IMG/VR virus record: IMGVR_UViG_3300028840_008185
Span: 254,374-318,373 of that record
Length of the DNA stretch: 64,000 nucleotides
Reading direction: 5' to 3' (one strand)
Shown: positions 1 through 15,867 of the stretch, piece after piece
Layout: each line of letters opens with the position of its first letter
Position numbering within the stretch: position 1 is the first letter of the stretch
Position numbers and translations under genes: made by a program
The notes under the pieces: model-generated
What the model was told of the DNA's origin: nothing
Seen by the model: the letters and a program-made list of their open reading frames with translations, nothing else
The model's database searches: none

Positions 1-755
1 TCAATAACAAAAGGCGGCAAATCATTTACTACAGTTCCGTTGATCCCTCTTCTATCCAAAGCTCTTTGCAGGGCTTTCTTGGCGTTGAATTCCATCTTCA
101 AGTGCTCCCTGCGCGAAGTCTGAGTTGGGTGCTGTCTATAGTGGTATGTGACAGGCTCCTTGATTCTATGAATCTTTGTAATCTCATCCACCCTCAGCGC
201 CAGATCGTAATCCTCAGACGATCTCATGGTTGTGTTGTGACCACCCACCTTCTCCATAATCTCCCGCCTAAAGAATCTTAGAGGAAAAAAACACATATAT
301 CGAAGAAGGACACTTGAATCAAACTCTCCACTGTTAGCCACATGTGGCAGAGTCCATTGTTTACCTTCATCACTGAAGCATATAAAGTTTCCACAGCAAG
401 CTCCTATTTCTGGGTGTTCATCCATATAATCCACAAAGGTCTGCAAGCAGTTCTCTGTAATTATGTCGTCCGATCCAACGTGGCAGACATACTTATGTTT
501 GTCGCTAAGCTTTGAATACGCCTCGCTTTTCGTCAAACCAATCGTTCCGCAATGCTCCCTTCTATGGAAGCTCACCCTATTGTCCGACGCCTTTACGACT
601 TTCTGCGCCGCTTCAAAAGTATCATCATCTGAACCGTCATCAAGGAATACCAGCTCCCAGTCTTCGTAGGTCTGGTTGATTATACTTGAGATGGCGGCAC
701 CTACATACTTAGCTACATTATATCCGGGCATATAGACCCCAACAGAACTTTTCAT
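1..755 (-). CDS. Family 2 glycosyltransferase (GT-A), runs off the left edge of the window
   Basis: Not in the ORF track (no stop in window). My translation from ATG 755: MKSSVGVYMPGYNVAKYVGAAISSIINQTYEDWELVFLDDGSDD...VGSDD...SSEDYDLALR...YHYRQH, with classic GT2 motifs. The ATG overlaps the upstream TGA (ATGA). Confidence 0.92.
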   Translation of the reverse strand, partial: MKSSVGVYMPGYNVAKYVGAAISSIINQTYEDWELVFLDDGSDDDTFEAAQKVVKASDNRVSFHRREHCGTIGLTKSEAYSKLSDKHKYVCHVGSDDIITENCLQTFVDYMDEHPEIGACCGNFICFSDEGKQWTLPHVANSGEFDSSVLLRYMCFFPLRFFRREIMEKVGGHNTTMRSSEDYDLALRVDEITKIHRIKEPVTYHYRQHPTQTSRREHLKMEFNAKKALQRALDRRGINGTVVNDLPPFVI

Positions 756-1336
756 AATAAACCTGCCTGCTTTGTTATTTTGTAACACAAATCGATGAAT
801 TCATTTTTGGACATTCTCGCCTTCGCGTGATTACACTTACTACAACATGGAGAACAATTTTCCAAAGTATAGCTTCTATTATTATCAATACGATCAACAC
901 CCACACGGGGAGGATCTTGAACATCTCTGTCACCGCAATAAACACAGGGTAACACTATTATAGATTCAAATTGTTCAATACTTATATTAAAAGAGATTCC
1001 TCTTATCTTGGCATTTCTTTTATATGTTGAAAAAAATCTTTTAATGGAACACTTTCTACCACAAGAATCGCAAAGCGGGGCGCCGTCATGTCTACTCACA
1101 ACTGGTTTTTCGCGGCCACAAACATAGCATACTTCTGGAAATTTTTTCTGTCGGCAAGGGCTACATAACACCAAGTCACCAATCCTGCGGGCTACTGGTT
1201 TTACTTTTCCACAGCCTGCACACATTTCAGCGTTTCTTAGATTTTGGCAGCCCTGGCATACGGGTAGTCCGTTGTCTCTGGCCCACACTTTTTTATCTTT
1301 TCCACAAACAGAGCAGGTTTCTATTTTAACTCCCAT
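752..1336 (-). CDS. HNH-like (endonuclease VII-type) protein with three N-terminal tandem Zn-ribbon repeats
   Basis: Three CxxCGxxKxVxxRxxxxxxCxxC units, then CVYCG...GVDRIDNNRSYTLENCSPCCSKCNHAK. Start moved from TTG 1363 to ATG 1336, which has GGAG 6 nt upstream. Confidence 0.75.
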   Translation of the reverse strand: MGVKIETCSVCGKDKKVWARDNGLPVCQGCQNLRNAEMCAGCGKVKPVARRIGDLVLCSPCRQKKFPEVCYVCGREKPVVSRHDGAPLCDSCGRKCSIKRFFSTYKRNAKIRGISFNISIEQFESIIVLPCVYCGDRDVQDPPRVGVDRIDNNRSYTLENCSPCCSKCNHAKARMSKNEFIDLCYKITKQAGLL

Positions 1337-1369
1337 GTCTTTCTCCACGGTGCAATTTTTCAAATCTAC

Positions 1370-2359
1370 TCATATCAAAGGCTCCGGATCTGGAGTCTGT
1401 ACTCCTAACAATTTACAATCATGATCCACCATGCGTTTCACAAGCTCTTCAAACTTCACTTTGGGCTCCCAACCTATGGCTTCTGTAGTGGCTGAGTAAT
1501 CTCCGCAAAGCTCATCAACCTCGGCTGGTCTCATGAAGAAACGATTCACTTTCACATAATCCTTCCAATTCAGCCCGACGTGACCAAAAGCAACCTCGCA
1601 GAACTCCCCAACCGTATGCATCTCGTTAGTGGCGAACACATAATCAGCAGGTTTTTCTTGCTGTAAGCACATCCAGAACCCCTCAACGAAGTCGGGCGCA
1701 TAGCCCCAATCTCTCTTAGCATCCAGATTCCCCAGCTCAAGAACATAATTGGGGTCTTGCAAACATTTTGCCACGCCCATGGAAATCTTCCTTGTTACGA
1801 AGAGGGGACCACGACGTTCAGATTCATGGTTGAATGTCACACCAGCACAGCAATACATCTTGTAAGCTTTCCTATACAGCCTGATGAAATGGTGACTGGC
1901 CACTTTGGCAATTGCATAAGGGCTCTCCGGAATAAGCAGCGTATCAAGGTTTTGTGGCGCAGGCGAAGACCCAAACATCTCAGAGGTGCTGGCGTGAAAG
2001 ATTCTAGTTTGAGGTCTTAAGCAGCGCACCACCTCTAGTATATTAATTAGCCCGCTAGTGTTAATATCGACAGTTGCAAGTGGCTGTTCAAAACTTGTAT
2101 GGACATGTGACTGAGCAGCCAGATTGTATATCTCATGTGGGCGAATATCCTCGATCAGCCTGAGCATTGACGAGGCGTCTGTAATGTCACCCTCTACAAT
2201 GTCAATAACCCCGTCGAGGTGTTTGGCGTTTCCTAGATCTCTGGTGGCGTTTCTTCGCATAACGCCAACAACATTATAGCTTTTTTCGTGAAGGAAGTCA
2301 GCCAAATGGCTCCCGTCTTGTCCGCACACACCAGTAATCAAAGCGGTTTTTCTCTTCAT
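1370..2359 (-). CDS. gmd: GDP-mannose 4,6-dehydratase
   Basis: ALITGVCGQDG, YNLAAQSHV, ASTSEMFG, SPYAIAK, FNHESERRG..FVTRKI and GNLDAKRDWG motifs. Confidence 0.97.
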   Translation of the reverse strand: MKRKTALITGVCGQDGSHLADFLHEKSYNVVGVMRRNATRDLGNAKHLDGVIDIVEGDITDASSMLRLIEDIRPHEIYNLAAQSHVHTSFEQPLATVDINTSGLINILEVVRCLRPQTRIFHASTSEMFGSSPAPQNLDTLLIPESPYAIAKVASHHFIRLYRKAYKMYCCAGVTFNHESERRGPLFVTRKISMGVAKCLQDPNYVLELGNLDAKRDWGYAPDFVEGFWMCLQQEKPADYVFATNEMHTVGEFCEVAFGHVGLNWKDYVKVNRFFMRPAEVDELCGDYSATTEAIGWEPKVKFEELVKRMVDHDCKLLGVQTPDPEPLI

Positions 2360-3342
2360 CTTAACTCTCCTTTTAGAATAGCTGCTCTATTCTTAACATA
2401 CCATTTAACCGTTTCATCGATTCCATCCTCAAAGGAAGTTTGGGCTTCAAATCCAAAATACTCTTTAGCCTTTGACACATCTAAACACCTTCTAGGTTGG
2501 CCATCCGGCATACTGGAATCCCATTCAACTTTCCCCTTGAAATCAATTCGTTTGGAAATGATATTCGCCAACTCCTTAATTGTGATCTCTTTGCCAGATC
2601 CTAAATTGACCGGCTCATCACCATCGTATTTCTCCATAGCATCGACTATAGCCGTTGCCGCATCTTTGACATACAAGAACTCCCTACTAGCACTTCCAGT
2701 GCCCCACAGCTCCACCTTATCCTCAGCCTCGTAAAACTTCCTAATCAGGGCTGGAATGACGTGGGAGTTTTGTAAATCAAAGTGATCATTTGGGCCATAT
2801 AGATTCACGGGCATGAGAAAGATGCCACGAAAACCCCACTGCTGCTTGTAGGTTTTAATCTGCATATAGAGCATTCTCTTTGTTAGGCCATAGGGAGCGT
2901 TAGTCTCTTCCGGGAAACCATCCCACAGGTTCTCTTCCTTAAATGGAACCGAACAATATTTTGGATACGAACAGACGCTTCCCAGCCCAACAAATTTGCG
3001 GAATTGGGGAGAAGGGAACGGCATCGCCTGCATTCTACTTTGGACATGCCAGGCAGCGTCCACAACGTTCGTATTCATGGCAAGATTTTCCCTCAAATAA
3101 GTAGCAGGGCTCGCTCTATTCGCGCCTATTCCACCACACTTGGCAGCAGCATGAATTATGAAATTTGGTCGAACATATCTAAACACAGATTCGGTTTCAG
3201 CCTTGTCCAGCAGATTTATATCTTTTCTGCCCAATGCTATAATATCCTCATACCCTCTGTTCCTAAGCTCTTCCTGTATGTGGGTGCCCAAGAAACCAGT
3301 CGCCCCTGTTATTAGTATTCTTCGTTCATGATAATCTGTCAT
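2356..3342 (-). CDS. fcl: GDP-L-fucose synthase (GDP-4-keto-6-deoxymannose epimerase/reductase)
   Basis: ITGATGFLG, AAKCGGIGAN, GSVCSYPK (epimerase Cys), YGLTK, PVNLYGPND..SHVIPALI (His), WGTGSASREFLYV and DGQPRR; adjacent to gmd. Confidence 0.95.
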   Translation of the reverse strand: MTDYHERRILITGATGFLGTHIQEELRNRGYEDIIALGRKDINLLDKAETESVFRYVRPNFIIHAAAKCGGIGANRASPATYLRENLAMNTNVVDAAWHVQSRMQAMPFPSPQFRKFVGLGSVCSYPKYCSVPFKEENLWDGFPEETNAPYGLTKRMLYMQIKTYKQQWGFRGIFLMPVNLYGPNDHFDLQNSHVIPALIRKFYEAEDKVELWGTGSASREFLYVKDAATAIVDAMEKYDGDEPVNLGSGKEITIKELANIISKRIDFKGKVEWDSSMPDGQPRRCLDVSKAKEYFGFEAQTSFEDGIDETVKWYVKNRAAILKGELR

Positions 3343-3350
3343 TTTTCATC

Positions 3351-4043
3351 CTATTTGTGCCAAACCTGAATGTCAGGAACTGAATTCACTAACAAATCAT
3401 TATCTATTTCACTTCTTGAGGCAACGAAAACCGCCCTTGTTACTGGATATTTCTTTTCTGCTTTCCAATCGAGGGGATATAGCTCTTCAAACTTGGGCTG
3501 CGTAATCGGCATATACACAAAATCCATATGCTTTTTCAATTGGTCAAAAACCCACCTCCTGGATGGCCGACAGGCTTCCCCACTGACGCTCTGGGTTGGG
3601 TCATATGTGAAATCTTTGCAATAGTCGATGCTTTTGCCACTATCGTATGAAACTATAGTCTCCAAAAGCAAGAGTGAATCGCACCAATTACACATACGCT
3701 CAAGAGCACCGAACGGGTCACCAAGATGATAGAGCAGACCGTAGGAATAAACTATGTCAAACTTCTCATCAAATTCCACATTTGGGGTGTCAACATCAAG
3801 CAAGAAGGCTCTGACGTGGGGAAATCTTTCCCCAAACACCGCCAGATTTTCTGGTCTCCCCTCTGTGCTGGTTACATCACAATCACGGTCAAGAAAAAAC
3901 TGCGTGTGATCTCCAATCCCTGCGCCAAGTTCTAGAACGGTTTTGTTTGTTAAATCAAGCCCCAGGCTTGCCAGGTGCTCAAAACGCACCTTGTTTACTA
4001 GCTGGTATCGTGGGGACGTAAAAGCTTCTTTAGGATCAATCAT
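3351..4043 (-). CDS. Class I SAM-dependent methyltransferase
   Basis: VLELGAGIG motif I, TEGR acidic site, FDIVYSYGLLYHL. Confidence 0.88.
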   Translation of the reverse strand: MIDPKEAFTSPRYQLVNKVRFEHLASLGLDLTNKTVLELGAGIGDHTQFFLDRDCDVTSTEGRPENLAVFGERFPHVRAFLLDVDTPNVEFDEKFDIVYSYGLLYHLGDPFGALERMCNWCDSLLLLETIVSYDSGKSIDYCKDFTYDPTQSVSGEACRPSRRWVFDQLKKHMDFVYMPITQPKFEELYPLDWKAEKKYPVTRAVFVASRSEIDNDLLVNSVPDIQVWHK

Positions 4044-4824
4044 TTAAACCTCCGTAGCCTATAATTTCGGATATGGGGCCAGCAACTCTGGCAATTTCAT
4101 TCTTTCGCGATTGTGGCGCCGCTGGCCAAGGAGGCAGTGGATCACTAACAACCGTGGGGGTCTTAGAATGTTTTATAGACGTGAGTCGTTGCACAGCCGT
4201 AGGATCTGGTGCTGGAATCTGCAAGAAAGCACAAAGCTCAGCAACTCTTTTGCCCTTTATCATGTCTTCAAACTTGTATCTAAAAATTCGCTCTTCTGGA
4301 ACATCTTCGAATAATTCAAGTATGCTGCTATTTACGAGTCTCCATGACCAAGCACACTTTTCTAGCTTGCTCATACTATCCCATTCATCGTAGTGTGGGT
4401 CACCTTTCCTGGGAGACGGCCACCACCACATATTTTTCCCCGCGAACACCTCGTAGTCGAAAATGCCAGAATTATGAATGGATCTAATTTGTGTTCTTGG
4501 ATCTCTCATCATATAAATGAATCTGGCGTCGGGAAAAACCTTAAAGAGTCCCTCCACGTAAAACGCAAGCATTCCATTTATTTCTCCAAAATCTTTGCCC
4601 GATTTCCACACTTCCTGGACAAGAGGAAGGCGCTCTTTTATAACAACCTCTTCGGCAGCCAACTCCCCTCTGTATACTTCCTGGTACTTGTCGAACATGG
4701 CCTTGGGGGAATCCTTGGTAATAATCTCATGATCGCAATACACAGAAGGCACCAAGTTCAAAATCTTGGCCAGAAGGTGCGTCCCACCATATCCATGACC
4801 GAAACCAAAAAATACCTTATTCAT
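4036..4824 (-). CDS. Sulfotransferase-like P-loop protein
   Basis: N-terminal GFGHGYGGTHLLAKIL (variant 5-prime-PSB loop), FIYMMRDPRTQIRS (3-prime-PB motif) and RYKFEDM. Confidence 0.75.
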   Translation of the reverse strand: MNKVFFGFGHGYGGTHLLAKILNLVPSVYCDHEIITKDSPKAMFDKYQEVYRGELAAEEVVIKERLPLVQEVWKSGKDFGEINGMLAFYVEGLFKVFPDARFIYMMRDPRTQIRSIHNSGIFDYEVFAGKNMWWWPSPRKGDPHYDEWDSMSKLEKCAWSWRLVNSSILELFEDVPEERIFRYKFEDMIKGKRVAELCAFLQIPAPDPTAVQRLTSIKHSKTPTVVSDPLPPWPAAPQSRKNEIARVAGPISEIIGYGGLND

Positions 4825-5701
4825 TCCTTTCTCCCTCTTTTCTCAAAACGAGCTTATCCACTATGGAATCTGGGTTCCCCCACTCGTGGAAAGTATTTAC
4901 TACAACCTTTCTCTCTTGCAGATTTTTCCGCATTATCCCTAAATTATGAGACTTCAGGACATTCCAATCAGGCGTAAACCTAACGCTATGATTGTCGGTC
5001 TTGTCCGGTATGCTGTGGTCCTGGTGTATGCCGACCATACGATGCTCAAAGACGGGCTGAACGCCAGACATTCTCATCCTGTTGGCAAAGTCATCGTCTT
5101 CTCCACATATCCCGCCCAAAAACCTTTCATCTACTCCGCGCATGCGCAGGACGTATTCCCTTTTAACAGCCATAAAGAACCAGTATGCTGGCGGGTGCGG
5201 CGGGCGCGTCAGACAGTCAACCTTCGCTCCGGGATACTCCAATATTTCAACAAAGGGCCTGCTCTTCCATTCATCATTTTTGCTCATGTGATCATTAAAC
5301 AGAGAGCTGCTTAAATACACCAAACCGTAAGCACACTGTTGTCTATTGACCATAGTTGAAGCAACAGCCAGGTTGTTTTCAGCTTGCAGGATCTCAGGTC
5401 CCGTGATGACCGCGACATCTCCAAGCGCACATCTAAAGCCAACATTATTGGTCAGGGCTGGAGTGAATGATTTAACATCGTAGAAGCTCTTGTTCTGATC
5501 CACCCAAATATACTGAAAATTAATTCCACTTTCCTCGTGATACTTTTTGCACAAATAAAGCAAATCGTCGCGCTTGGCGTCATCCACCATCACAATTTCA
5601 AAATCATCTTTGGACAAAGTTTGTTTAGCATAGGTATGAAGCGCCCTGTCGAACAGTTTTTCTCTATTATCACATGCAGATATTACCACCGAAACTTTCA
5701 T
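4817..5701 (-). CDS. Family 2 glycosyltransferase with GT7-like C-terminal motif
   Basis: VSVVIS...FEIVMVDDA, NNVGFR, and GVDERFLGGICGEDDDFANR..GIHQDH. Confidence 0.85.
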   Translation of the reverse strand: MKVSVVISACDNREKLFDRALHTYAKQTLSKDDFEIVMVDDAKRDDLLYLCKKYHEESGINFQYIWVDQNKSFYDVKSFTPALTNNVGFRCALGDVAVITGPEILQAENNLAVASTMVNRQQCAYGLVYLSSSLFNDHMSKNDEWKSRPFVEILEYPGAKVDCLTRPPHPPAYWFFMAVKREYVLRMRGVDERFLGGICGEDDDFANRMRMSGVQPVFEHRMVGIHQDHSIPDKTDNHSVRFTPDWNVLKSHNLGIMRKNLQERKVVVNTFHEWGNPDSIVDKLVLRKEGERNE

Positions 5702-6339
5702 CCATTCACCTTAGGGGCGCACACAAAGATACTTGACGTGCCGAAATGTTTTCTAAACCAATTGTTTTCACTCATAAATTTGGGCAAATACTTGAAAGAT
5801 TTGGGCATCCTTCTTCCCGTATCCTTTATAATACGGAGATTCGATTTACCTATGAGCTTTTTCCAACGCCTATGATACATAAAGCGCTCATCCCCATACT
5901 CCTTTGTCTTGTCCCACCTTCGGGCGTTTGGAATATCAAAAATGACTTTTTTGCCCACACGGGCAGACTCGTTCAAAAGTTTGATAATATCCTCATCACT
6001 GAAGTGCTCTAAGAAACCTTGGTGAAAAATACAATCTATGCTGCCATCACCATAAGGCATGTCGAATGCGTCAACTTTTTCCACCATAAGCTCTGGCATC
6101 TTTTCCTCGATGTCTTCGAGTAACTCATCCTCTATGTCCGATGCCGTTACGTTGTCTCTACCACTGTATAGCAGGACTAGTGATGTATAACCGCTCCCAG
6201 ATGCTATTTCCAGCAACGAGTCACCCTTCTTGGTGTTTTTCAAAATCTCATTGATGTAATGTTCCTGGATTAGAACAGTCCTAAAGACTGTGAACTTGTC
6301 AAAAAAGCCCTTCCACTTTCCTATTTCAGCCAATTTCAT
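5698..6339 (-). CDS. Class I SAM-dependent methyltransferase
   Basis: LLEIASGSG, VTASDI, DAFDMPYGDGSIDCIFHQGFLEH; AGGAG RBS. Confidence 0.9.
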   Translation of the reverse strand: MKLAEIGKWKGFFDKFTVFRTVLIQEHYINEILKNTKKGDSLLEIASGSGYTSLVLLYSGRDNVTASDIEDELLEDIEEKMPELMVEKVDAFDMPYGDGSIDCIFHQGFLEHFSDEDIIKLLNESARVGKKVIFDIPNARRWDKTKEYGDERFMYHRRWKKLIGKSNLRIIKDTGRRMPKSFKYLPKFMSENNWFRKHFGTSSIFVCAPKVNG

Positions 6340-6374
6340 GTCTATGCTCCTTTCATTTTTGCATTATTTTTTTC

Positions 6375-7367: not shown

Positions 7368-7385
7368 AAATTTTGGTCCTCTCCC

Positions 7386-8345
7386 TTAGCTGTTCAAAAG
7401 TTTCTTCCCAAATTCCATCGTGATTTCACCGCCCTCGCTCGTCAATAATAATTTGCGATCAGGGCACACAACCACAACTAGATCGAACTTATTCCATGCG
7501 GCTCTGGGCGCAGCATCTATAAGATTTACGTAACTCAATTTGTCCGATATGTTTTTAGAACTTTCACTCTTAAGGACATGAAAATTCATATTTTTATAAT
7601 GCTTATGCACCGATTCAACGGCAGCAATTAGCATCTCCTCGGGAGGGTTATTAACTGGTATAAATGCCGTCACCGGATACATGTATTCAGATCTCACACC
7701 ATACCTGCGAAAGTATATGATTTGGAATTTTTGTGCGTGGCCCTGAGACCTGTAAGCTTCTACATTGCCACTTTTAAGGCTGTCCCTGCAATCCAGATGG
7801 TCTATTTTAGCGCCAGGGCAATTTACAATTTTTCCTCCAAGCCGCAAAATCCTGGCATCAAATTCATTGTCTTGGCCATAATAGGGAAAATCAGTGTTCC
7901 AGTAATTCATTGTTTTCATGGTCTCATTGAGAACACAGCCTATAAGTGGAGAGGGAAACCCTCTAATCGCACCATCTCCCTGTGTGGAAAAGCCGCCCAT
8001 ATCTTTTGGCCCAAGTTTTTGCATAAGGTCGTGCATTAGAGTGAGTGAGTTTCCAAGAGGCACGGTGTCATCGCTTAGCCAAGTGATATACTTTCCTGAA
8101 GCCTTCTTAAACCCCTCGTTGTAAGCGTGGGTAATGTTGGTCTTTTTGCCGCTAAATATGGGTACAACATTTCTGGTTTTTCGCACCTGTTCCAACCACT
8201 CAATAGTGCCATCGGTTGAGCCGGCATCATTTATAACCATTTCTATAGACATGTTCGGAGTACTCAGTACCTTTTGCACTACTTTTTGCAAAAGCTCCAG
8301 CCTATTACATGTTCCCATTACAACACTTAAATCTGAATTCGACAC
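7386..8345 (-). CDS. Family 2 glycosyltransferase
   Basis: LSVVMGTCNR, VINDAGSTDGT, AYNEGFKKASGKYITWLSDD, YYGQDNEFDAR. Confidence 0.92.
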   Translation of the reverse strand: MSNSDLSVVMGTCNRLELLQKVVQKVLSTPNMSIEMVINDAGSTDGTIEWLEQVRKTRNVVPIFSGKKTNITHAYNEGFKKASGKYITWLSDDTVPLGNSLTLMHDLMQKLGPKDMGGFSTQGDGAIRGFPSPLIGCVLNETMKTMNYWNTDFPYYGQDNEFDARILRLGGKIVNCPGAKIDHLDCRDSLKSGNVEAYRSQGHAQKFQIIYFRRYGVRSEYMYPVTAFIPVNNPPEEMLIAAVESVHKHYKNMNFHVLKSESSKNISDKLSYVNLIDAAPRAAWNKFDLVVVVCPDRKLLLTSEGGEITMEFGKKLLNS

Positions 8346-8366
8346 GATTACTCCCTTATTTGTTTA

Positions 8367-10439
8367 TCACCCAGCATTTGCTTTCTCAATTACCAATTGA
8401 ACTTCTTCTATAATGTCTCTTCTATCCTTCTTTTCTAAAAACTTATCGGCGTAGAGACGAACGACCCGCACATCATCTTCCATTTCTGGTTGCGGCTTGC
8501 GAACTATTATATAGTCAAAAAGGCCAAACTTATCTAGCGCTGCTTTGCCAAGAGCATCAGAAAAGCAAGTGAATACCATATCGGGCATTCTACGTCGCAG
8601 GGTAACAAGCCTATCATGAAGTCGTTTCACCAAGGCTGAATCAACATAAAGTAAGTCGGGTTGATACTCAGCCACTCGCTTGACTACGTGCGAGTTACAA
8701 AATATGCCTTGAAAATCTACGTTGGCGAAAGAAATTCGGTGCTCATACCTTCTGTCCGTTGATTCTTCAACAATTCCCATAACCCTATATTTTCTTTCCT
8801 TTGTGCGAAGCAGGCGGTGCTCCGCAATCTCTTCATCAGAGGCCTCCTCCACCATGCCGATCCTTATAGCAAGTTCTTTTACTCGTCTGTAATCAGAATG
8901 TTGTTCTATAACTTTTGCAGCGCCCCTCTTGCCCATTTCAGCAGCTTCAACGGGGTTATTGAGATAGTGTCCAACAAGTCTTTTACACTCACTTAAATCT
9001 TTAAACCAAGCAACATCCTTTCCATTTTCAAAATACTTTTCTAGCCCTGGTATATAGTGACAAACCACCGGAGTCCCAGACGCCATAGTGATTAGTTGTC
9101 TATCAGAAAAATACATTGGTATGTTATTAAAATGGTTTACATTAATAGCAACTTCTGCGGCATTATATACCTCGTTTTGCGTGTAGTATCCGATAGCTCC
9201 TCTGCAAGAATTAGTTCTTTTCCAGCCAGACCCGTAAAGTGCAAATCTATTCCCGAAAGTATTATAAAGTTCGCACACTATTTTTTTTCTCAGGTTGCTG
9301 TCAGGAAAATGGCTTGAGCACAAGGCACAGAACACCACATCATGATCGTATTTTGCACGAAGACTGGCTCTTTTTTCTTTGCTTAATGGTAGAAACTTTT
9401 CGGTATTTACGCCTATCTGCCAGTAATCTACATTGGGACACCCTGCATTTCTATACAGTTTTACTTGCCCCTCACTACTAAGCAACGAAAAATCCACCTG
9501 TTTGCCAATATCAATGAAATATGGGTTAACGGTTGCCCTTACATCCCCAGTCCAATTTGTTATTATTACATCGGGCAACACCCTCCTAATGTCATTTATA
9601 ACGCTCGCCGGAATCATACCAGTAAACTGAAGCTGCATATGAATCCAATCGGGCCCAAAAGTGTGACATATGTTCTTTAGAGTCTCACTTGTCTGAGCGG
9701 CGCCGTGTCTTGCAAAAAAATTACGAAAATCGAAAGTATATAAATCAAAACCATTTTTTATAAAGGCGTTTTCCATGCCTGTTTGAAATATACTTATGTT
9801 ATTGGCTGGTAAATACAGCACCTTCTTGCCACCCTCGTTGACCTTGTGATTTTTAGAAACAACGAGGCCTACTGGCGGAATTGGAAGTTTTGACTTTGAT
9901 TTTCTTCTCTTAGGGTTCCTAGGAGGTCTAGCCTTCCTATCTCTTACTCTTTTCGATCTGGGTTTCTTAGGATTCACCCTTTTGGGAGGGGGAGGAGGGG
10001 GAGCGACAGAATCAGTCGAAACCAATTTAGCTGTGGTCTGTGGCTTTACCTTCTCGCCCTTAACAAGTTCGACTTTAACCTTCCTAATCAACATCGTGCC
10101 GGTTCCTTTAGACCCTCTCCACACCCTGAAGGTCATTGGAACGGTTGGCGGAAAACGCCCGGTGACAACATCTATACTATATGTTGACCACTCACCCCTA
10201 TCACATGTTATTTCTGAGGCGGCAAAGTCGAAATTCTTGTTGCCATATATATTACAACGCACGATGCCGTTTCCACTTTCTCTGCATAGCTCTATAGTCA
10301 AGTTGTATACAGCCTTTGGAAGAACGTTGACTGGGATATACAACATTGACTTAGGGCCTATCATTGCTGTATATTTGCCGCCCCCATCCTTACGAGTCTG
10401 AATATCTCTTCCTCTCCAAGAAGGTTGTAGTATTTCCAT
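8367..10439 (-). CDS. GT-B glycosyltransferase (CgeB/Glyco_trans_1_2-like) with N-terminal beta-sandwich and Pro/basic linker
   Basis: YNAAEVAINVNH...FSDRQLITMASGTPVV..GLEKYFENGKDV is CgeB-like. The N-terminal ~130 aa are beta-rich (CBM-like, uncertain). Linker PPPPPPKRVNPKKPRSKR... Confidence 0.8.
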   Translation of the reverse strand: MEILQPSWRGRDIQTRKDGGGKYTAMIGPKSMLYIPVNVLPKAVYNLTIELCRESGNGIVRCNIYGNKNFDFAASEITCDRGEWSTYSIDVVTGRFPPTVPMTFRVWRGSKGTGTMLIRKVKVELVKGEKVKPQTTAKLVSTDSVAPPPPPPKRVNPKKPRSKRVRDRKARPPRNPKRRKSKSKLPIPPVGLVVSKNHKVNEGGKKVLYLPANNISIFQTGMENAFIKNGFDLYTFDFRNFFARHGAAQTSETLKNICHTFGPDWIHMQLQFTGMIPASVINDIRRVLPDVIITNWTGDVRATVNPYFIDIGKQVDFSLLSSEGQVKLYRNAGCPNVDYWQIGVNTEKFLPLSKEKRASLRAKYDHDVVFCALCSSHFPDSNLRKKIVCELYNTFGNRFALYGSGWKRTNSCRGAIGYYTQNEVYNAAEVAINVNHFNNIPMYFSDRQLITMASGTPVVCHYIPGLEKYFENGKDVAWFKDLSECKRLVGHYLNNPVEAAEMGKRGAAKVIEQHSDYRRVKELAIRIGMVEEASDEEIAEHRLLRTKERKYRVMGIVEESTDRRYEHRISFANVDFQGIFCNSHVVKRVAEYQPDLLYVDSALVKRLHDRLVTLRRRMPDMVFTCFSDALGKAALDKFGLFDYIIVRKPQPEMEDDVRVVRLYADKFLEKKDRRDIIEEVQLVIEKANAG

Positions 10440-10473
10440 ATTTATTTGACCTCTCTAGGTGGTATATTTGCCT

Positions 10474-11037
10474 TTATACTTTATAGCATTTTAGGTGTAT
10501 AGCTGGATAAAAATTGATATTCTCTAGTTCTTCAAAGGACGCGAAACCATGCACAAATAATAAATCCTCTAAAGTTTGACGCGTATATCCACAATAATGA
10601 TGATCCCACTTGGTTCTTTGTGTTCCGTGTATACAACGTATATACCATTCGTCATCGAATTCTGGAGATTCAATCCACTCCTTGGCAAATCCCTTCAGAT
10701 CGGGAACTGCCACATAAAGCGAGCCATGCTGTTTAAGAACTCTGTGCATCTCTTTAATATTTTTGTGTACTTCATATTGGGGGATGTGCTCCAAAACATG
10801 CAAAACTATTATCTCATCGACCTCACCATCTTCGTAAGGAAGTTTTTCAATCTCTGCTCGAACGTCGGACACGACATACGTGGGCGACTCGCCCCAGTCA
10901 TGTTTGTAATAGTTGTCCAGAGTTGTTTTATTATCCTCAAAATCCAAATTGTCGTTTGCTATAAAATCGGGAGCAGCATCTATATTTACGAACCCCTCAA
11001 GATATATAGTTCCACAACCTAGATGCAATCTTAACAT
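10474..11037 (-). CDS. SAM-dependent methyltransferase (Methyltransf_11-like, glycan-cluster type)
   Basis: LHLGCG..YLEGFVNID, EIIVLHVLEH, RVLK..G.L.VAVPD. Start moved to ATG 11037, behind a GGAGGTGA RBS. Confidence 0.88.
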   Translation of the reverse strand: MLRLHLGCGTIYLEGFVNIDAAPDFIANDNLDFEDNKTTLDNYYKHDWGESPTYVVSDVRAEIEKLPYEDGEVDEIIVLHVLEHIPQYEVHKNIKEMHRVLKQHGSLYVAVPDLKGFAKEWIESPEFDDEWYIRCIHGTQRTKWDHHYCGYTRQTLEDLLFVHGFASFEELENINFYPAIHLKCYKV

Positions 11038-11041
11038 AGAT

Positions 11042-13318
11042 TCACCTCCTAGCCCCTTTAAACATGGCATTATAGATGTGATTTATTGTAAACTCGTTGC
11101 CTTTCTTTTCCATAGCTTTTGCAAAGTTCTTGCTATTGGCAGAGAACTGTTCCCAGAGGCCCTTGTCTTCTTTCATCTTTCTGATTGCTTTGGCAAATAG
11201 AAGATAAGCATTTGGGTTCCAAACTAAAGAGCCATTAACCCCGTCGCTCACTACCTCTGATACAGCCCCAACATCTGAAGCTATTACTGGAGTGCCGCAA
11301 GTCATGGCTTCGAGAATGACGAGGGGCAATCCTTCCATATTTGATGGAAGTATTAGAGCATCAAAAGCCGCATAGAACTTCTCAACATCCTGTCTGTGCC
11401 CAACAAAGTATACATTTTTGAACTGCGCCGCTGCCTGTTTCAACGCGGCACCTTGTGGGCCATCTCCTACAAGCACGAAAGCCGCATCGGTGACTACCTG
11501 GGCGCACTTAAGTATCACTGCCAAATTCTTTTCTGGCGAAAGTCTGCCCACATAACCAACGACAAAATCTTCTTTCACGTCAAGATCTTTTAGTATTTCT
11601 TTTGAACGAGGAATCTTGAAACGATCCCAATCCACTTGTTGCGGGAGAACCGCCACGTTTTTATTTCCGTCTTTCAGGAGCTTTCTACCCATATGTCCGG
11701 AAACAGAGATGAGTGTAGCTACTAGCTTGTCTCTCGCCGCAACCTTGCACATAGAATCTTGCCACATAAGCTCGCTGTGAACAGTCTCGATTACGCGACA
11801 CCTGAAGCCTTGCTGCCATGCCTGCCGCAACACGTTGTATACTCCAAAGCTATTGTAGAAATGGACTATACTGTAATTGTAGGATTCTACGAAGCACTTT
11901 AGGGCGTATCCTTTGCCCTGTCCCGACAGATCTTGATATATAGCTCCAGTATCCTTGAATAGTTTATCTAATTCTTCACTAATGCCGGATATAAAAGCTA
12001 TATGTGGCTCATAAATGCTTTTATCTAATTTGTCAATTGTGTGCTTGATCCAAACTTCTCCTCCGCCGGCCATTTTGTATGGGACAATGTAAAGAACCTT
12101 TCTTTTGTCATTTATTCTACTACTCTTTTTGGGAATAGGTAAATCTAAAATCATCTGGGCAGCATTTTCCCAAGAGAACTCTTCAGTTGTCTTTTTCGCC
12201 GCCTCTTGGATTCTGGCCTTTTCTACGTCCGCGTTTTCATAGACCCGGCGCATCAATTCGGCACAGTGCCTCGTGTCTGGGTCGCCCACCACCGCATCTT
12301 TGTTGTGAACCCAATACTGCATGGAAGCAGGTGCTTGCATTTCACCCGTATTTATTAGTAGAGAGTTGTCATCATTGAGAAATTCAAGCTGGCCACCGTG
12401 ACGTGGCGCAATAACAAGCATCCCGCAGGCCAAAGCCTCTAATCCTGGGAGCCAGAAGCCTTCGCAGGAACTCATGCTCACGACCGCATCACAGGCAGTA
12501 TAAAGCGATCCAATGTCGGGAATATATGTGTTGATAATCTCCACTTCTGGAGGGTTCTTTCTGCCCTTAAATGCCCGTTCTAACACGCTTTCTACGTCTA
12601 CCTCAAACGGTTTGTCTGCATCGGGTTGCTTAAATTTTGTTTTCATCACAAGGCAGACATCATCATCGCCAGAAAAGGCGCTCAGATAAGCTTCTAGGAC
12701 CCTCTCATGCAGCTTTCTGTGGTGAGGTATGGCGTTGTGTAAAAATTTCACTTTCTTTTCTGTTCGCAGCTTGAACGGAGTAATTTCTGGGTTGAACATA
12801 TTGGTGTCTACGCCATGAGGCACTACCAACATCTTGCTCTCGGGTATGCCATTCTTGGCGAAAATATCATAGGAATATTGACTGGATGGAAGCACATAGT
12901 CAATTGCATGATGGTAGAGATGCCAGCCCGGAGGTAGAATAGAACTCTCAAAGTTCCATATTCCTGCGCGAGCTAGGGATTGTGGGAAAAAGCGCCTTGG
13001 AAATTGATAGAAAATTGTGTAAGCGATCTCAAGGTCATACGGAAAGTTCTTGTCCGCCACTTCTGGCAACTTGTTTTGGGGAGTGGCTTTTATCTGCTTG
13101 CCATCTTCCATTAGGTAATCCACTGGACCTTGGCTAAGTGAGCCGTGGTAACCAGGGACCAAGTATGGACGAAGATCGTCAGGAAAGTGTTCAAGATTGT
13201 TGGTGGACCTCATGTGAATTTCATGGCCCCCGATGTTCACCATCGCTCGGGCCAGATATTGCGAGACAAAGCTCCATGAGTGCTGAGTCCCTAGCATTGT
13301 ATGCCATCTAACTTTCAT
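11042..13318 (-). CDS. Tandem double GT4 (GT-B) glycosyltransferase
   Basis: Domain 1: VVPHGVD...YTACDAVVSMSSCEGFWLPGLEALACG. Domain 2: GYVGRLSPEKN...FDALILPSNMEGLPLVILEAMTCGTPVIASDVG. Confidence 0.93.
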   Translation of the reverse strand: MKVRWHTMLGTQHSWSFVSQYLARAMVNIGGHEIHMRSTNNLEHFPDDLRPYLVPGYHGSLSQGPVDYLMEDGKQIKATPQNKLPEVADKNFPYDLEIAYTIFYQFPRRFFPQSLARAGIWNFESSILPPGWHLYHHAIDYVLPSSQYSYDIFAKNGIPESKMLVVPHGVDTNMFNPEITPFKLRTEKKVKFLHNAIPHHRKLHERVLEAYLSAFSGDDDVCLVMKTKFKQPDADKPFEVDVESVLERAFKGRKNPPEVEIINTYIPDIGSLYTACDAVVSMSSCEGFWLPGLEALACGMLVIAPRHGGQLEFLNDDNSLLINTGEMQAPASMQYWVHNKDAVVGDPDTRHCAELMRRVYENADVEKARIQEAAKKTTEEFSWENAAQMILDLPIPKKSSRINDKRKVLYIVPYKMAGGGEVWIKHTIDKLDKSIYEPHIAFISGISEELDKLFKDTGAIYQDLSGQGKGYALKCFVESYNYSIVHFYNSFGVYNVLRQAWQQGFRCRVIETVHSELMWQDSMCKVAARDKLVATLISVSGHMGRKLLKDGNKNVAVLPQQVDWDRFKIPRSKEILKDLDVKEDFVVGYVGRLSPEKNLAVILKCAQVVTDAAFVLVGDGPQGAALKQAAAQFKNVYFVGHRQDVEKFYAAFDALILPSNMEGLPLVILEAMTCGTPVIASDVGAVSEVVSDGVNGSLVWNPNAYLLFAKAIRKMKEDKGLWEQFSANSKNFAKAMEKKGNEFTINHIYNAMFKGARR

Positions 13319-13319
13319 A

Positions 13320-13508
13320 TTACTCGTCTCCCTTGACTACGACTGGTGGCTGCTGTTGGCGCTGCTTATGCTCCTTGAAAAGATTGGCAATCAACTCCCT
13401 AAGAACTCCCGTCACTGTTTTGTAATTCTCTTTCGCATATTGCGACAAGAATTCATATAGTTCGGGCTCCAGACGAATATTGATTTGCCTTCGTTTTTCT
13501 GTGCTCAT
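13320..13508 (-). CDS. Ribbon-helix-helix (Arc/CopG-like) DNA-binding protein
   Basis: RRQINIRLEPELYEFLSQYAKENYKTVTGVLRELI has the alternating beta-strand plus two-helix pattern; GAGGAG RBS. Confidence 0.8.
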   Translation of the reverse strand: MSTEKRRQINIRLEPELYEFLSQYAKENYKTVTGVLRELIANLFKEHKQRQQQPPVVVKGDE

Positions 13509-13534
13509 AGTTGCTCCTCACTAGATAAATATTA

Positions 13535-13578
13535 CCTTTCAAAACTAATGATGATATATTGATAGATTTTGATAGATT
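13535..13578 (-). promoter_or_regulatory. Putative promoter/operator: AATCTATCAA x2, and CTATCAATA-N15-TGAAAGG
   Basis: 10-bp direct repeat at 13559-13578. The same bipartite motif lies upstream of the sheath gene. Confidence 0.55.
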
Positions 13579-13597
13579 TTTTCTAACTTTTTGCAAG

Positions 13598-13625
13598 AAA
13601 AAAGGGAGGCTGTGAGCCTCCCTTT
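13598..13625 (-). terminator. Intrinsic terminator after the structural module
   Basis: AAAGGGAGGC-tgtga-GCCTCCCTTT hairpin, followed by a U-run on the minus strand, 20 nt after the 735-aa gene stop. Confidence 0.85.
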
Positions 13626-13644
13626 AATTCTGTGTTTTTTCTTT

Positions 13645-15852: not shown

Positions 15853-15867
15853 TTTTCAAATCTCCTA

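Follow-up and report, generated by a model that had tools for sequence, protein, structure and literature searches.

The locus examined here lies at the start of a 64,000-nucleotide stretch (positions 254,374 to 318,373 of IMG/VR record IMGVR_UViG_3300028840_008185; hereafter the window) of an uncultivated, contractile-tailed huge phage with a genome of about 452.6 kb, found in sediment and seawater metagenomes. It was analysed by open reading frame calling, by profile searches (Pfam, NCBIfam, PHROGs and the PDB) and by structural comparison. Its features, all on the minus strand, are as follows.

13645..15852 (-): flanking gene for a 735-aa probable beta-helix tailspike/receptor-binding protein, of which only the N-terminal 120-160 aa or so are conserved in relatives; atlas matches to Beta_helix/pectate-lyase-like phage proteins scored 0.84-0.85 and count as a lead only.
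13601..13625 (-): terminator-like hairpin (11-bp stem, 6 GC pairs, followed by TTTTCTTGC) between the last tail-fibre gene and the island.
13561..13580 (-): tandem direct repeat, AAAATCTATC x2, upstream of the RBS (GAGGAG) of the RHH gene; a candidate operator by inference only.
13320..13508 (-): 62-aa ribbon-helix-helix (RHH; Arc/CopG-like) protein, the first gene of the unit; no Pfam hit, but PHROG Arc-like repressor families at E 4.5e-6 to 1e-3 and the RHH protein AvtR in the PDB at E 0.02; conserved in all relatives (47-77% identity).
11042..13318 (-): tandem GT4-GT4 glycosyltransferase (758 aa; PF00534 in 2 stretches, E 2.7e-44), both halves of which keep E-x7-E (E285..E293 and E662..E670).
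10474..11037 (-): SAM-dependent methyltransferase (187 aa as called in public assemblies; 198 aa from the upstream ATG at 11070), 85% identical in the nearest relative, L032.
10050..10439 (-): N-terminal CBM-like beta-sandwich domain, predicted from an AF2 model (aa 1-130 of a 690-aa protein encoded at 8367-10439).
8367..10049 (-): remainder of the 690-aa protein, with a Pro/Lys/Arg-rich linker (about aa 131-200), a CgeB-type GT domain (PF13524, E 2.9e-23, aa 385-523 matched) and a C-terminal region of about 150 aa without an assignment.
7386..8345 (-): GT2 glycosyltransferase (319 aa; Pfam E 1.2e-18).
6375..7367 (-): radical SAM/SPASM-twitch enzyme (330 aa), whose closest solved relative is the carbohydrate dehydrogenase BtrN (E 2e-11); phrog_21308 is a GT-rSAM fusion family.
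5698..6339 (-): SAM-dependent methyltransferase (213 aa).
4817..5701 (-): GT2 glycosyltransferase (294 aa), 91% identical in L032.
4036..4824 (-): sulfotransferase (262 aa; PF13469, E 1.8e-10; whole-chain fold match to sulfotransferase clusters, TM 0.80-0.86), with an RDPRTQIRS 3'-phosphate-binding-type motif and a GHGYGGTHLL N-terminal loop; 93% identical in L032.
3351..4043 (-): SAM-dependent methyltransferase (230 aa), overlapping the sulfotransferase gene by 8 bp; bacterial methyltransferase-sulfotransferase fusions exist.
2356..3342 (-): GDP-L-fucose synthase-like epimerase/reductase (fcl; 328 aa); the top 18 PDB hits are all GDP-L-fucose synthases (best E 4e-59), with the S-x-C and Y-x3-K motifs aligned.
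1370..2359 (-): GDP-mannose 4,6-dehydratase (gmd; 329 aa; PF16363, E 8e-109).
752..1363 (-): HNH/endonuclease VII-like zinc-ribbon endonuclease (194-203 aa; PHROG E 4e-14 and 2e-10), with four CxxC pairs and a DRIDN...CCxxCN motif; a selfish insert, not part of the pathway, with extra copies in relatives.
1..755 (-): GT2 glycosyltransferase, cut by the window edge; the full gene runs 42 nt further and is followed outside the window by a 288-aa NAD-dependent sugar epimerase/dehydratase-like gene and then by tubulin (GT2 and epimerase-like gene at L001:18331-19161 and L001:17483-18349, in the coordinates of sequence L001; 56-57% and 38% identity in relatives L013/L014).

All 14 genes listed by an earlier sequence-only reading are present with the domains it named, including six GT domains, and its observation therefore holds. 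Intergenic gaps are -37 to +35 bp. Three points need correction. First, the unit runs about 890 bp past the window start, ending with the complete GT2 and one more sugar epimerase, and so comprises 16 genes over 14.4 kb. Second, although the earlier description of the operon as lying directly downstream of the tail genes is true in position, the unit is not simply coupled to them, as the strong terminator-like hairpin and a 137-bp spacer lie between the last tail-fibre gene and the RHH gene, and this hairpin and the dedicated RHH gene mark a separate unit. An equivalent hairpin with the same stem ends sits before the RHH gene of relative L020, while none was found in relatives L028 or L033. 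Third, gmd and fcl score below the NCBIfam equivalog cut-offs (339 vs 415 bits and 284 vs 500 bits, respectively), such that the family is secure but the exact product (L-fucose or another 6-deoxyhexose) is inferred. In addition, both genes are frameshifted in one public assembly, and hence either the fucose branch may be dispensable or that assembly may be faulty.

The island is phage-encoded. It lies between baseplate/tail-fibre genes (with baseplate J, sheath initiator and sheath upstream) and tubulin/UvsW/DnaB genes. The same order was assembled independently in at least three samples: the same 22-kb order occurs in ENA ERZ27256783 (452,619 bp) and JGI 3300017963 (452,599 bp), and JGI 3300017971 (a 186,528-bp contig) holds the first 15 kb of it, with the ENA copy being identical and the two JGI copies 99.96-99.97% identical. 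The k-mer depth is about 175 in two runs. Furthermore, the same frame, consisting of tail genes, RHH, tandem GT4, a GT with a CBM-like domain, a variable cassette, GT2, epimerase, and tubulin, recurs in at least 10 related huge-phage contigs, as assessed by gene tables and by tblastn over 10 related loci. In a distant member, a minimal version (one GT4, two GNATs, and an epimerase) sits between the same tail genes and TubZ.

Within this frame, the tandem GT4 is a clade-specific core gene, with about 85 homologue clusters at 41-79% identity followed by an abrupt drop to 37% or less. Of 83 homologues, 17 carry an intein at one site inside the first E-x7-E motif. The next GT carries the conserved CBM-like N-domain (56-68% identity), which in relatives is fused to different catalytic domains, either GT2 or CgeB-like. 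An AF2 model of this domain (pLDDT 88.7) matched CBM4/6/16/35 folds by Foldseek (TM 0.6-0.68, E 1e-5 to 1e-6), and only 64 representatives were found among 1.84 billion proteins. The middle of the island is mosaic, in that cassette genes are 85-93% identical to those of L032 while the core GT4 is 79% and the CBM-GT 52% identical.

We also looked beyond the island for the sugar-donor, sulfation, DNA-modification, and membrane genes that would bear on its role. The phage encodes an APS kinase (E 4e-63), which backs sulfation, and a second sulfotransferase lying 17 bp upstream of a PHROG "tail protein" that has a ConA-like lectin domain, which offers a link to the virion. The APS kinase co-occurs with sulfotransferase-like genes in two of the records compared (G000 and G002) and both are absent in the third (G001), although this rests on n=3 only. 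No manC and no ThyA-family dCMP/dUMP hydroxymethylase were found in the 318 kb of the genome searched, which leaves out about 134 kb outside the IMG/VR record. Within the same limits, no flippase, polymerase, or priming transferase is present there or in three relatives: Wzx, WecA/MraY-type, and Bac_transf families (PF01943, PF00953, and PF02397) are absent from all four phage records, with positive controls, and a hydrophobicity scan of all 406 ORFs followed by Pfam analysis of the polytopic ones revealed no membrane protein of that kind.

In light of these findings, what might the island do? We propose that it is a self-contained, cytoplasmic glycan-assembly island, forming a separate transcription unit that opens with a small RHH regulator. 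In this view, the phage makes part of its own sugar donors, with GMD and the Fcl-like enzyme converting GDP-mannose (supplied by the host, as no manC is present in the part searched) to GDP-L-fucose or a close 6-deoxyhexose, and with the APS kinase boosting PAPS. The tandem GT4 would lay down a conserved two-sugar primer, or a repeating disaccharide, on a conserved acceptor. The next GT would be delivered by its CBM-like domain, on a long basic linker, which would recognise the primer or the acceptor while the catalytic domain differs from phage to phage. Three GT2s would then extend or branch the chain, to be tailored by three O- or N-methyltransferases, one sulfotransferase, and the BtrN-like radical SAM enzyme. 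As none of the island's products has a membrane span and no flippase, polymerase, ABC exporter, or priming transferase is encoded in the part searched, the chain would be finished in the cytoplasm. What the sequence analysis shows is the enzyme families, the APS kinase itself, the fusion architecture of the CBM-GT, the exchange of the middle of the island between phages in the manner of a serotype locus, and, within the 318 kb, the absence of manC and of membrane machinery; the sugar product, the link of the APS kinase to the island, the activity of the tandem GT4, the role of the CBM-like domain, the order and positions of extension and tailoring, and the acceptor are all inferred.

The most likely acceptor, in our opinion, is a surface protein of the phage particle (fibres, tail, or head), giving each lineage its own methylated, sulfated, deoxyhexose-containing coat. 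We are highly confident that this is a real phage-encoded glycan island with a conserved frame and a variable middle, and moderately so that its product is methylated and sulfated and contains a 6-deoxyhexose, but virion glycosylation, while the best reading, remains tentative. No acceptor was identified: no Ser/Thr-rich tract stands out in the real (minus-strand) proteins, and the CBM-like domain has no paralogue in virion proteins. In addition, co-expression with virion genes is not shown, given the terminator-like hairpin and the island's own regulator, and the island borders replication genes on its other side.

The sequence-only reading is thus only partly supported in its interpretation. 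It was right that the operon is virus-encoded and that no transporter or priming transferase accompanies it, within the scope of our searches. However, its step from this absence to soluble acceptors, such as virion proteins, is weaker than stated, because soluble phage GTs can act on host lipid-linked intermediates and use host exporters. Its alternative of DNA as the acceptor has no support in the 318 kb searched, and its view that the glycan would be unusually elaborate for a tailed virus is overstated, as a cyanomyovirus with 13 GTs has been reported (PMC12801897).

The strongest alternative, which we consider unlikely but do not exclude, is remodelling of the host envelope for receptor conversion or superinfection exclusion. 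Here, the soluble phage GTs would work at the inner face of the membrane on lipid-linked intermediates started by the host's own priming enzyme, and the altered glycan would be exported by host Wzx/Wzy, ABC, or teichoic-acid transporters, changing the surface that the phage's own tailspike recognises. The island does sit beside a variable beta-helix tailspike-like gene, and a variable receptor-binding protein next to a variable glycan cassette is what receptor conversion would predict. GT2/GT4 families and tandem GT4 architecture are typical of O-antigen and capsule loci, and the nearest solved relatives of the GT4 second half (PglA, BshA, TarM, WaaG, and WbnH) include enzymes that act on undecaprenyl-linked acceptors (PglA, WbnH, WaaG, and TarM). 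There is also a parallel in the prophage-encoded soluble GT TarP, which modifies wall teichoic acid using the host exporter. On the other hand, no membrane-bound component (Gtr-type, Wzy, acyltransferase, or flippase) appears in the island of any of about 10 loci examined, or in four phage records, and a six-GT foreign chain would have to be accepted by host exporters. Moreover, the core GT4 is conserved across phages that presumably infect different hosts, the second sulfotransferase is embedded among tail-protein genes, and frequent inteins and homing endonucleases imply that co-infection by relatives is common, which argues weakly against efficient exclusion.

Less likely still is a soluble or released product found neither on virions nor on the host envelope, such as a cytoplasmic methylated polysaccharide, a glycosylated small molecule, or a matrix released at lysis. 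All enzymes are soluble, methyltransferases are abundant, no acceptor protein was identified, and a CBM-like domain could bind a free growing polymer; mycobacterial methylmannose and methylglucose polysaccharides, for example, are made in the cytoplasm without lipid carriers. However, it is hard to see why such a product would come from a hypervariable, clade-wide locus with a conserved primer enzyme placed at the tail-gene junction, and no hydrolase, export, or carrier gene is present in the island.

Glycosylation of phage DNA, with hypermodified bases carrying a glycan, to evade restriction is very unlikely. Phage GTs put one or several sugars on hydroxymethylated bases (cited in PMC12619734), the island borders replication genes, and the strongly basic linker of the CBM-GT could bind DNA. 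Nevertheless, in addition to the lack of a ThyA-family hydroxymethylase in the 318 kb, a search for Tet/JBP gave no hit (a weak result, as the control genomes were also silent), the GT families are polysaccharide-type, and GDP-fucose, three methyltransferases, sulfotransferases, and six GT domains are far beyond any known DNA glycan. Finally, host chromosome misjoined to a phage contig, or a host island wrongly kept in a record that IMG/VR labels "provirus", is effectively refuted, despite an island GC (43.4%) in the lowest 4% of same-size windows of the genome, by the phage genes on both sides, the independent assemblies, the recurrence of the frame, and a gmd that is 65-73% identical to phage relatives but only about 50% to any cellular genome.

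Glycan synthesis by viruses has been observed previously. Comparable GT clusters of large (jumbo) cyanophages have been interpreted as modifying the host surface (PMC7824862; PMC12801897). As a precedent in favour of virion glycosylation, soluble viral GTs in PBCV-1 build a conserved core plus variable, methylated, fucose-containing capsid glycans, and a giant-virus glycan cluster with sulfate-metabolism genes has been described (PMC9614988). To this known theme, the present island adds a clade-specific tandem GT4 with an intein in some homologues, a conserved CBM-like domain fused to different catalytic domains, a mosaic middle within a frame shared by related huge phages, and a phage-encoded APS kinase along with a second sulfotransferase next to a tail protein.

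The gene content proposed in the sequence-only reading of this region was confirmed gene by gene by profile searches against Pfam, NCBIfam and PHROGs, and all long ORFs of window 1-16,000 lie on the minus strand. The genes identified are as follows.

13320-13508, minus strand: 62-aa predicted ribbon-helix-helix (RHH) protein
11042-13318, minus strand: 758-aa protein with two GT4 halves (tandem GT4)
minus strand: three class-I methyltransferases
minus strand: 690-aa protein with a CgeB-type GT domain (PF13524), its linker (aa about 131-200) at 9840-10049
minus strand: three GT2 enzymes, one of them cut by the window edge
6375-7367, minus strand: radical SAM/SPASM enzyme
minus strand: sulfotransferase
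minus strand: GDP-L-fucose-synthase-like enzyme (fcl)
minus strand: GDP-mannose 4,6-dehydratase (gmd)
minus strand: zinc-ribbon HNH/endonuclease VII-like protein (E 4e-14)

Gaps between the genes range from -37 to +35 bp. The 62-aa protein has the sequence match expected of Arc/CopG-type regulators, whose fold is an N-terminal beta-strand followed by two helices: it matches Arc-like repressor families in PHROGs (E 4.5e-6 to 1e-3), as a profile it matches the RHH protein AvtR in the PDB (E 0.02), and a conserved QINIRLE..L..F motif appears in its alignment; its DNA binding is inferred from sequence alone. The closest solved relative of the radical SAM enzyme is BtrN (E 2e-11), a radical SAM dehydrogenase acting on an aminocyclitol (2-deoxy-scyllo-inosamine) in butirosin biosynthesis. 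A single 735-position PHROG family, phrog_21308, aligns its first part to the GT4 domain and its second part to the radical SAM enzyme; GT-radical SAM fusions therefore exist in other phages, and NCBIfam also has a GT family defined by radical SAM linkage (TIGR04157).

The two enzymes of the predicted GDP-L-fucose pathway are secure at the family level. The gmd product matches PF16363 over residues 7-310 (E 8e-109), although its TIGR01472 score of 339 bits is below the 415-bit equivalog cut-off. The 18 best PDB hits of the fcl product are all GDP-L-fucose synthases, and alignment to 8du0 (E 4e-59) places the catalytic Ser-x-Cys (GSvCsYP) and Tyr-x3-Lys (YgltK) motifs in register, while the position of Escherichia coli His179 is Asn, as in 8du0; the NCBIfam score of 284 bits is again below the cut-off (500 bits). 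In the JGI 3300017963 assembly, which is 99.96% identical over 22.3 kb, the only two indels are a 2-nt deletion in gmd (window 2181-2182) and a 1-nt deletion in fcl (about 2837), each of which frameshifts its gene. This is either a real variant that lost the fucose branch or an assembly error, and the assembled ENA/Logan contigs carry the intact form. The sulfotransferase matches PF13469/PF17784, its whole chain (residues 1-259) matches sulfotransferase folds at TM 0.80-0.86, and an RDPRTQIRS PAPS-binding-type motif is visible, although the N-terminal 5'-phosphosulfate loop is atypical (GHGYGGTHLL). Sequence-level PDB searches with the sulfotransferase (weak CurM/TPST hits only), with the 690-aa protein and with each of the two GT4 halves did not indicate the acceptor class.

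The window is the last 64 kb of a 318,373-bp IMG/VR record, numbering in which is given here as genome positions. In the adjoining DNA the cut GT2 is complete and is followed by a 288-aa NAD-dependent sugar epimerase-like gene, and then (genome 238,488-253,386) by a tubulin/TubZ-like protein, a UvsW-type helicase, DnaB, an IstB-like AAA protein, PrkA kinase, SpoVR, a YpsA/SLOG protein, a sigma-70-family factor and a class I/II-type ribonucleotide reductase. The unit thus has 16 genes and spans 14.4 kb, about 890 bp more than could be seen from the sequence alone.

The locus is phage DNA and not host DNA. Upstream of the island lie a probable beta-helix tailspike (a lead only), a 952-aa and a 2,288-aa protein, baseplate J, a sheath initiator and the sheath. 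The 952-aa tail-region protein (window 15868-18726) is conserved and has a Dockerin_1 match (E 5e-7, aa 604-677) that recurs in relatives. The same 22-kb order is present in independent public assemblies, namely ENA ERZ27256783 (contig k141_1691178, 452,619 bp) and JGI 3300017963 (contig Ga0180437_10000007, 452,599 bp), while the JGI 3300017971 contig (186,528 bp) ends inside the 690-aa GT gene and so contains only the first 15 kb; the ENA copy is identical to the window and the two JGI copies are 99.96-99.97% identical. The phage reaches about 175x k-mer depth in two sediment/seawater runs. The true genome is therefore about 452.6 kb, assembled at least twice independently, and the IMG/VR record (labelled 'provirus', CheckV 79%) is a trimmed part of it, lacking about 34 kb beyond the window end and about 100 kb beyond the record start, such that every absence reported below applies to the 318 kb examined and not to the remaining 134 kb or so. 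The gmd gene is 65-73% identical to the copies in related phages but only about 50% identical to any of 185,579 species genomes, and these best cellular hits are spread over many phyla and so give no host signal. Island GC (43.4%) is somewhat below the genome mean (45.8%), in the lowest 4% of same-size windows, which fits cassette exchange, not host origin.

The island is a hallmark of a clade of huge phages. The tandem GT4 has about 85 homologue clusters at 41-79% identity, after which similarity drops abruptly to 37% or less, and the contigs carrying it reach 460 kb, with one of them being an NCBI assembly (GCA_902730225.1, 305,730 bp) that presumably, from its accession series, belongs to the huge-phage set of Al-Shayeb 2020. 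In every context examined the order is the same: a protein of about 2,300 aa, a protein of about 940 aa (often with a weak dockerin-type match), zero to two variable receptor-binding proteins, the RHH gene, the tandem GT4, a GT carrying a conserved N-terminal domain, and a variable cassette. In the two relatives whose sequence reaches the far end (loci L013 and L014), the order closes with the GT2, the epimerase and tubulin. Cassette contents differ widely and include CgeB-GT2 fusions of 884-1,197 aa, GT47/exostosin-type GTs, DegT aminotransferases, FdtA isomerases, radical SAM-methyltransferase pairs, one to three sulfotransferases, and gmd/fcl. A distant member has a minimal version between the same flanks, consisting of one GT4, two GNAT acetyltransferases, two unknown genes and the epimerase, followed by TubZ and UvsW. 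In the nearest relative (core GT4 79% identical) the sulfotransferase is shared at 93%, one GT2 at 91% and one methyltransferase at 85%, but the GT with the conserved N-terminal domain is only 52% identical, and within the 10 kb examined downstream of its GT4 there is no gmd, fcl or radical SAM gene. Cassette genes more similar than the backbone show recent exchange between phages. Mobile elements are also frequent: gmd carries an intein in the relative L033 (20081-22234; 717-aa product with PF14890) and is interrupted by insertions of about 1.1-1.2 kb at two different positions in L013 (17795-19936) and L014 (6442-8616), while homing endonucleases (LAGLIDADG_2, GIY-YIG, HNH) are scattered through the islands and tail genes of relatives. 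A megablast search of the 13.5 kb against 50,697 phage records found nothing, and the closest cultured relative by baseplate J, Bacillus phage G, is only 31% identical and has no such island after its baseplate genes.

Both halves of the tandem GT4 keep the E-x7-E motif of retaining GT4 enzymes (E285..E293 and E662..E670), with the first half being the more conserved (130 against 79 positions conserved in at least 90% of sequences). Of 83 full-length homologues, 17 carry an intein of about 340-350 aa with a LAGLIDADG-type endonuclease, all at one site inside the first E-x7-E motif. Inteins typically occupy conserved active-site motifs of indispensable genes, and we infer from this that the enzyme is under strong constraint in the clade. 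The first 130 residues of the 690-aa protein form a domain that is 56-68% identical across relatives while its fusion partner changes, being a CgeB-type domain here, GT2 domains in proteins of about 500 aa, and both in longer fusions. An AlphaFold model built on that alignment is confident (pLDDT 88.7) and matches CBM4, CBM6, CBM16 and CBM35 beta-sandwiches (TM 0.60-0.68, E 1e-5 to 1e-6). The family is tiny, with 64 representatives among 1.84 billion proteins, nearly always at the N-terminus of proteins of 200-1,200 aa, and the domain has no paralogue in this phage, including among its virion proteins. It is followed by a 60-90-residue proline-rich, mostly strongly basic linker whose composition, but not sequence, is kept in most relatives; here (window 9840-10049) it is extremely basic, with 27 K/R and 16 P in 105 residues, and could bind an anionic partner such as DNA, membrane or sulfated glycan.

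The donors would come partly from the host and partly from the phage. GDP-mannose must come from the host, as no NTP_transferase-family gene (PF00483) is present in the 318 kb examined. For sulfation, the phage encodes a 182-aa APS kinase at genome 52,292-52,840 (209.7 bits), whereas ATP sulfurylase was not found in the 318 kb examined, with PF01747 matching only below threshold in a cytidylyltransferase-like protein and the CysD type being absent. The APS kinase sits (genome 50,580-54,849) with adenylosuccinate synthetase, an ankyrin-repeat protein, an HNH endonuclease, an M50 peptidase and, two genes away, a 308-aa DHH phosphoesterase, which, at a guess, could remove the PAP by-product, as NrnA-type enzymes do. 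A second sulfotransferase (283 aa, 58.9 bits), not detectably related to the first by BLASTP, lies between a Kelch-repeat protein and a 773-aa protein (genome 216,962-221,119), 17 bp upstream of the latter, which matches a PHROG 'tail protein' family (E 1e-19) and has a ConA-like lectin domain. Among three records, APS kinase and sulfotransferase-like genes occur together in two and are both absent in one, which is suggestive at this sample size and nothing more.

In light of these findings, where might the glycan be put? No island protein has a membrane span, and a hydrophobicity scan of 406 ORFs found as polytopic proteins only two M50 peptidases, a tape-measure-like protein and a 286-aa EamA/DMT-family transporter with about 10 membrane spans (genome 123,566-124,426), which is the only transporter-like protein seen and lies 130 kb from the island. 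Initiating phosphoglycosyl transferases (Bac_transf, PF02397, and the WecA/MraY type, PF00953) gave no match in this record or three related phage records, with positive controls in 10-12 of 14 reference genomes, and the Wzx family (PF01943) was likewise absent (10-13 of 14 controls positive across the three families). The chain is therefore completed in the cytoplasm by enzymes predicted to be soluble, which fits virion glycosylation. The virion reading is further favoured by the absence of any membrane component in about 10 islands, by the conservation of the primer enzyme and targeting domain across many phages, by the minimal one-GT island occupying the same place, and by the sulfotransferase embedded among tail-protein genes. 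Virion proteins are thus the acceptor we favour, but only tentatively, and a composition scan for Ser/Thr-rich tracts returned spurious plus-strand ORFs as its top scorers and nothing convincing in real proteins. Nor is the position of the island decisive: it is on the same strand as the tail genes and adjacent to them, but a terminator-like hairpin (window 13625-13601), a tandem AAAATCTATC repeat preceding the RHH gene, and the dedicated RHH gene itself intervene, and no RNA run containing the region was found. An equivalent hairpin occurs in one of three relatives scanned (2 of 4 loci in all), so separate transcription is not established for the clade, although the island looks like its own regulated unit at the border between tail and replication genes.

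The main rival, modification of the host envelope, is held to be somewhat less likely but is not excluded, as soluble GTs can decorate host lipid-linked intermediates and rely on host primers and exporters, and the polymorphic GT clusters of large cyanophages have been interpreted as host-surface modification against superinfection (PMC7824862; PMC12801897). In its favour, the gene next to the island is a variable tailspike-like protein, so that a variable receptor-binding protein sits beside a variable glycan cassette, and the nearest solved relatives of the GT4 second half include enzymes that act on undecaprenyl-linked acceptors. A free or other product is improbable. Glycosylation of DNA has no support and is very unlikely, since there is no ThyA-family hydroxymethylase (PF00303) in the 318 kb examined, no Tet/JBP hit (PF12851, for which the control was also silent), and the predicted chemistry is far beyond known DNA glycans.

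Thus, the observation made from the sequence alone holds, with the extensions described here. Its interpretation, that the operon builds a methylated, sulfated and fucosylated glycan on soluble acceptors such as virion proteins or DNA, is supported only in part: the glycan chemistry is plausible and the locus is certainly viral, but the acceptor is unproven. The gene families, the conserved frame, the mosaic middle and the absence of membrane machinery from the sequence examined are shown by the analysis, while the enzymatic activities and the exact product, DNA binding by the RHH protein, the link between APS kinase and the island, the constraint on the GT4, the roles of the GT4 and CBM-like domain, and the acceptor are inferred.

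A conserved recognition module on a tether, with exchangeable catalytic domains, placed right after a conserved primer enzyme, suggests (but does not show) a two-tier scheme in which the GT4 makes a common primer and the CBM-like domain brings variable extension enzymes to it. Taken furthest, a whole clade of 300-460-kb phages would carry a serotype-like locus that coats the virion with a lineage-specific, methylated and often sulfated glycan, by a logic not described for any virus: a conserved, intein-invaded tandem GT4 would lay a universal primer on a conserved particle protein, a conserved CBM-like module on a basic tether would recruit interchangeable GT domains to that primer, and the rest of the cassette would be swapped between co-infecting phages. 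We regard this as possible, though less likely than not. If true, tailed phages would have an exchangeable glycan 'antigen' system comparable to bacterial O-antigens and giant-virus fibril glycans.

Virus-encoded glycosylation is well documented for giant eukaryotic viruses and a few mycobacteriophages, whereas for large phages it is usually dismissed as 'host surface modification' without evidence. The island offers a defined, clade-wide test case, with a conserved primer enzyme important enough to host an intein in its active-site motif, a conserved targeting domain fused to interchangeable catalytic domains, and a mosaic cassette with predicted chemistry that is rare for phages, namely sulfation backed by a phage APS kinase, radical-SAM sugar tailoring, and amino- and deoxy-sugars; the core GT4 and the CBM-like domain are, moreover, small, predicted to be soluble, and expressible. 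If the acceptor is the virion, huge phages carry variable glycan coats, which would bear on adsorption, particle stability in sediments, grazing and recognition by defence systems. If it is the host envelope, lytic huge phages rewrite their host's serotype on a large scale. We found no paper describing this island, and none that brings together jumbo phages, sulfotransferases and glycosyltransferases; the huge-phage paper (Al-Shayeb 2020) makes no mention of glycosyl, glycan, polysaccharide or intein, and the phage G study mentions glycosylation only as a possible DNA modification. Large GT sets in tailed phages are, however, already reported (13 GTs; PMC12801897), so the size alone is not unprecedented. 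What is new is the conserved frame (RHH, intein-prone tandem GT4, CBM-tethered GT, terminal GT2 and epimerase), the serotype-like mosaic middle, and the phage-backed sulfation.

How does the island compare with known systems? It shares with Wzx/Wzy- or ABC-dependent surface-polysaccharide clusters the clustering of GT2/GT4 transferases with nucleotide-sugar synthesis and tailoring genes, but it is not a member of that class, because the defining primer and export genes were looked for and not found in the sequence examined. ABC-transporter-dependent O-antigen assembly (E. coli O9a WbdA, WbdD, Wzt) likewise has a tandem GT4 polymerase, a methyl-type terminal modification and a carbohydrate-binding module that reads the finished chain; there, the CBM sits on the exporter (Wzt) and the chain grows on undecaprenyl pyrophosphate, while here no exporter, primer or chain-length regulator is encoded in the sequence examined and the CBM-like domain sits on a GT. 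The clusters of large cyanomyoviruses (P-SSM2, S-SCSM1, S-SCSM2R) also combine many GTs (up to 13) with sugar epimerases, are polymorphic between relatives and are of unproven function (PMC7824862; PMC12801897), but they are read as LPS or cell-wall modification, include KDO/LPS-type genes and, as far as those papers describe, are not framed by a conserved tandem GT4, RHH and CBM-GT and are not placed at the tail-fibre junction. Mycobacteriophages of the Che8 type are tailed phages whose own GTs reportedly glycosylate capsid and tail-tube subunits in the cytoplasm (Freeman et al. 2023, as cited in PMC12619734 and PMC11256854); they reportedly have about two GTs in genomes of 50-60 kb, with no nucleotide-sugar synthesis, sulfation or variable cassette of this size reported for them. 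By analogy only, and at the level of logic, the island resembles the glycosylation of the Bacillus spore crust and exosporium (CgeB, SpsA, CotSA, BclA glycans), where a large protein particle assembled inside a cell is coated with methylated or deoxy-sugar glycans by soluble GTs without lipid carriers and then released by lysis. The 690-aa protein carries the same Pfam family as CgeB (PF13524), which is only a family-level resemblance, the spore system being a cellular developmental programme and there being no evidence that this phage infects a spore-former.

The island works most like the chlorovirus and Megavirinae glycosylation systems, with GTs and sugar-nucleotide enzymes that are encoded by the virus and predicted to be soluble. 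The fibril glycosylation clusters of mimivirus and moumouvirus are likewise clustered and clade-specific and combine nucleotide-sugar synthesis, multidomain GTs and tailoring enzymes, and the 12-gene cluster of Moumouvirus australiensis contains two sulfate-metabolism genes, which suggests sulfated sugars (PMC9614988). Those systems, however, use different sugars (viosamine, bacillosamine, rhamnose) in a different host domain, their acceptor is known to be fibril proteins, and no conserved primer GT plus targeting-domain logic has been described for them. In chlorovirus PBCV-1 (A064R, A061L, A075L, A111/114R, viral GMD and GMER), virus-encoded soluble cytoplasmic GTs, some of them multidomain, together with viral GDP-fucose synthesis and separate methyltransferases, build a conserved core glycan with lineage-specific extensions on the capsid protein without lipid-carrier or flippase genes (PMC9614988). 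PBCV-1 is a eukaryotic virus with an icosahedral capsid, N-linked glycans on one major capsid protein and scattered genes, whereas here the host is prokaryotic, the genes form one tight operon with an RHH regulator, and a tandem GT4 core, a CBM-tethered GT and sulfotransferases are added. At the family level, relatives of this phage even carry Exostosin/GT47-type GTs, and PBCV-1 A075L was originally annotated as an exostosin.
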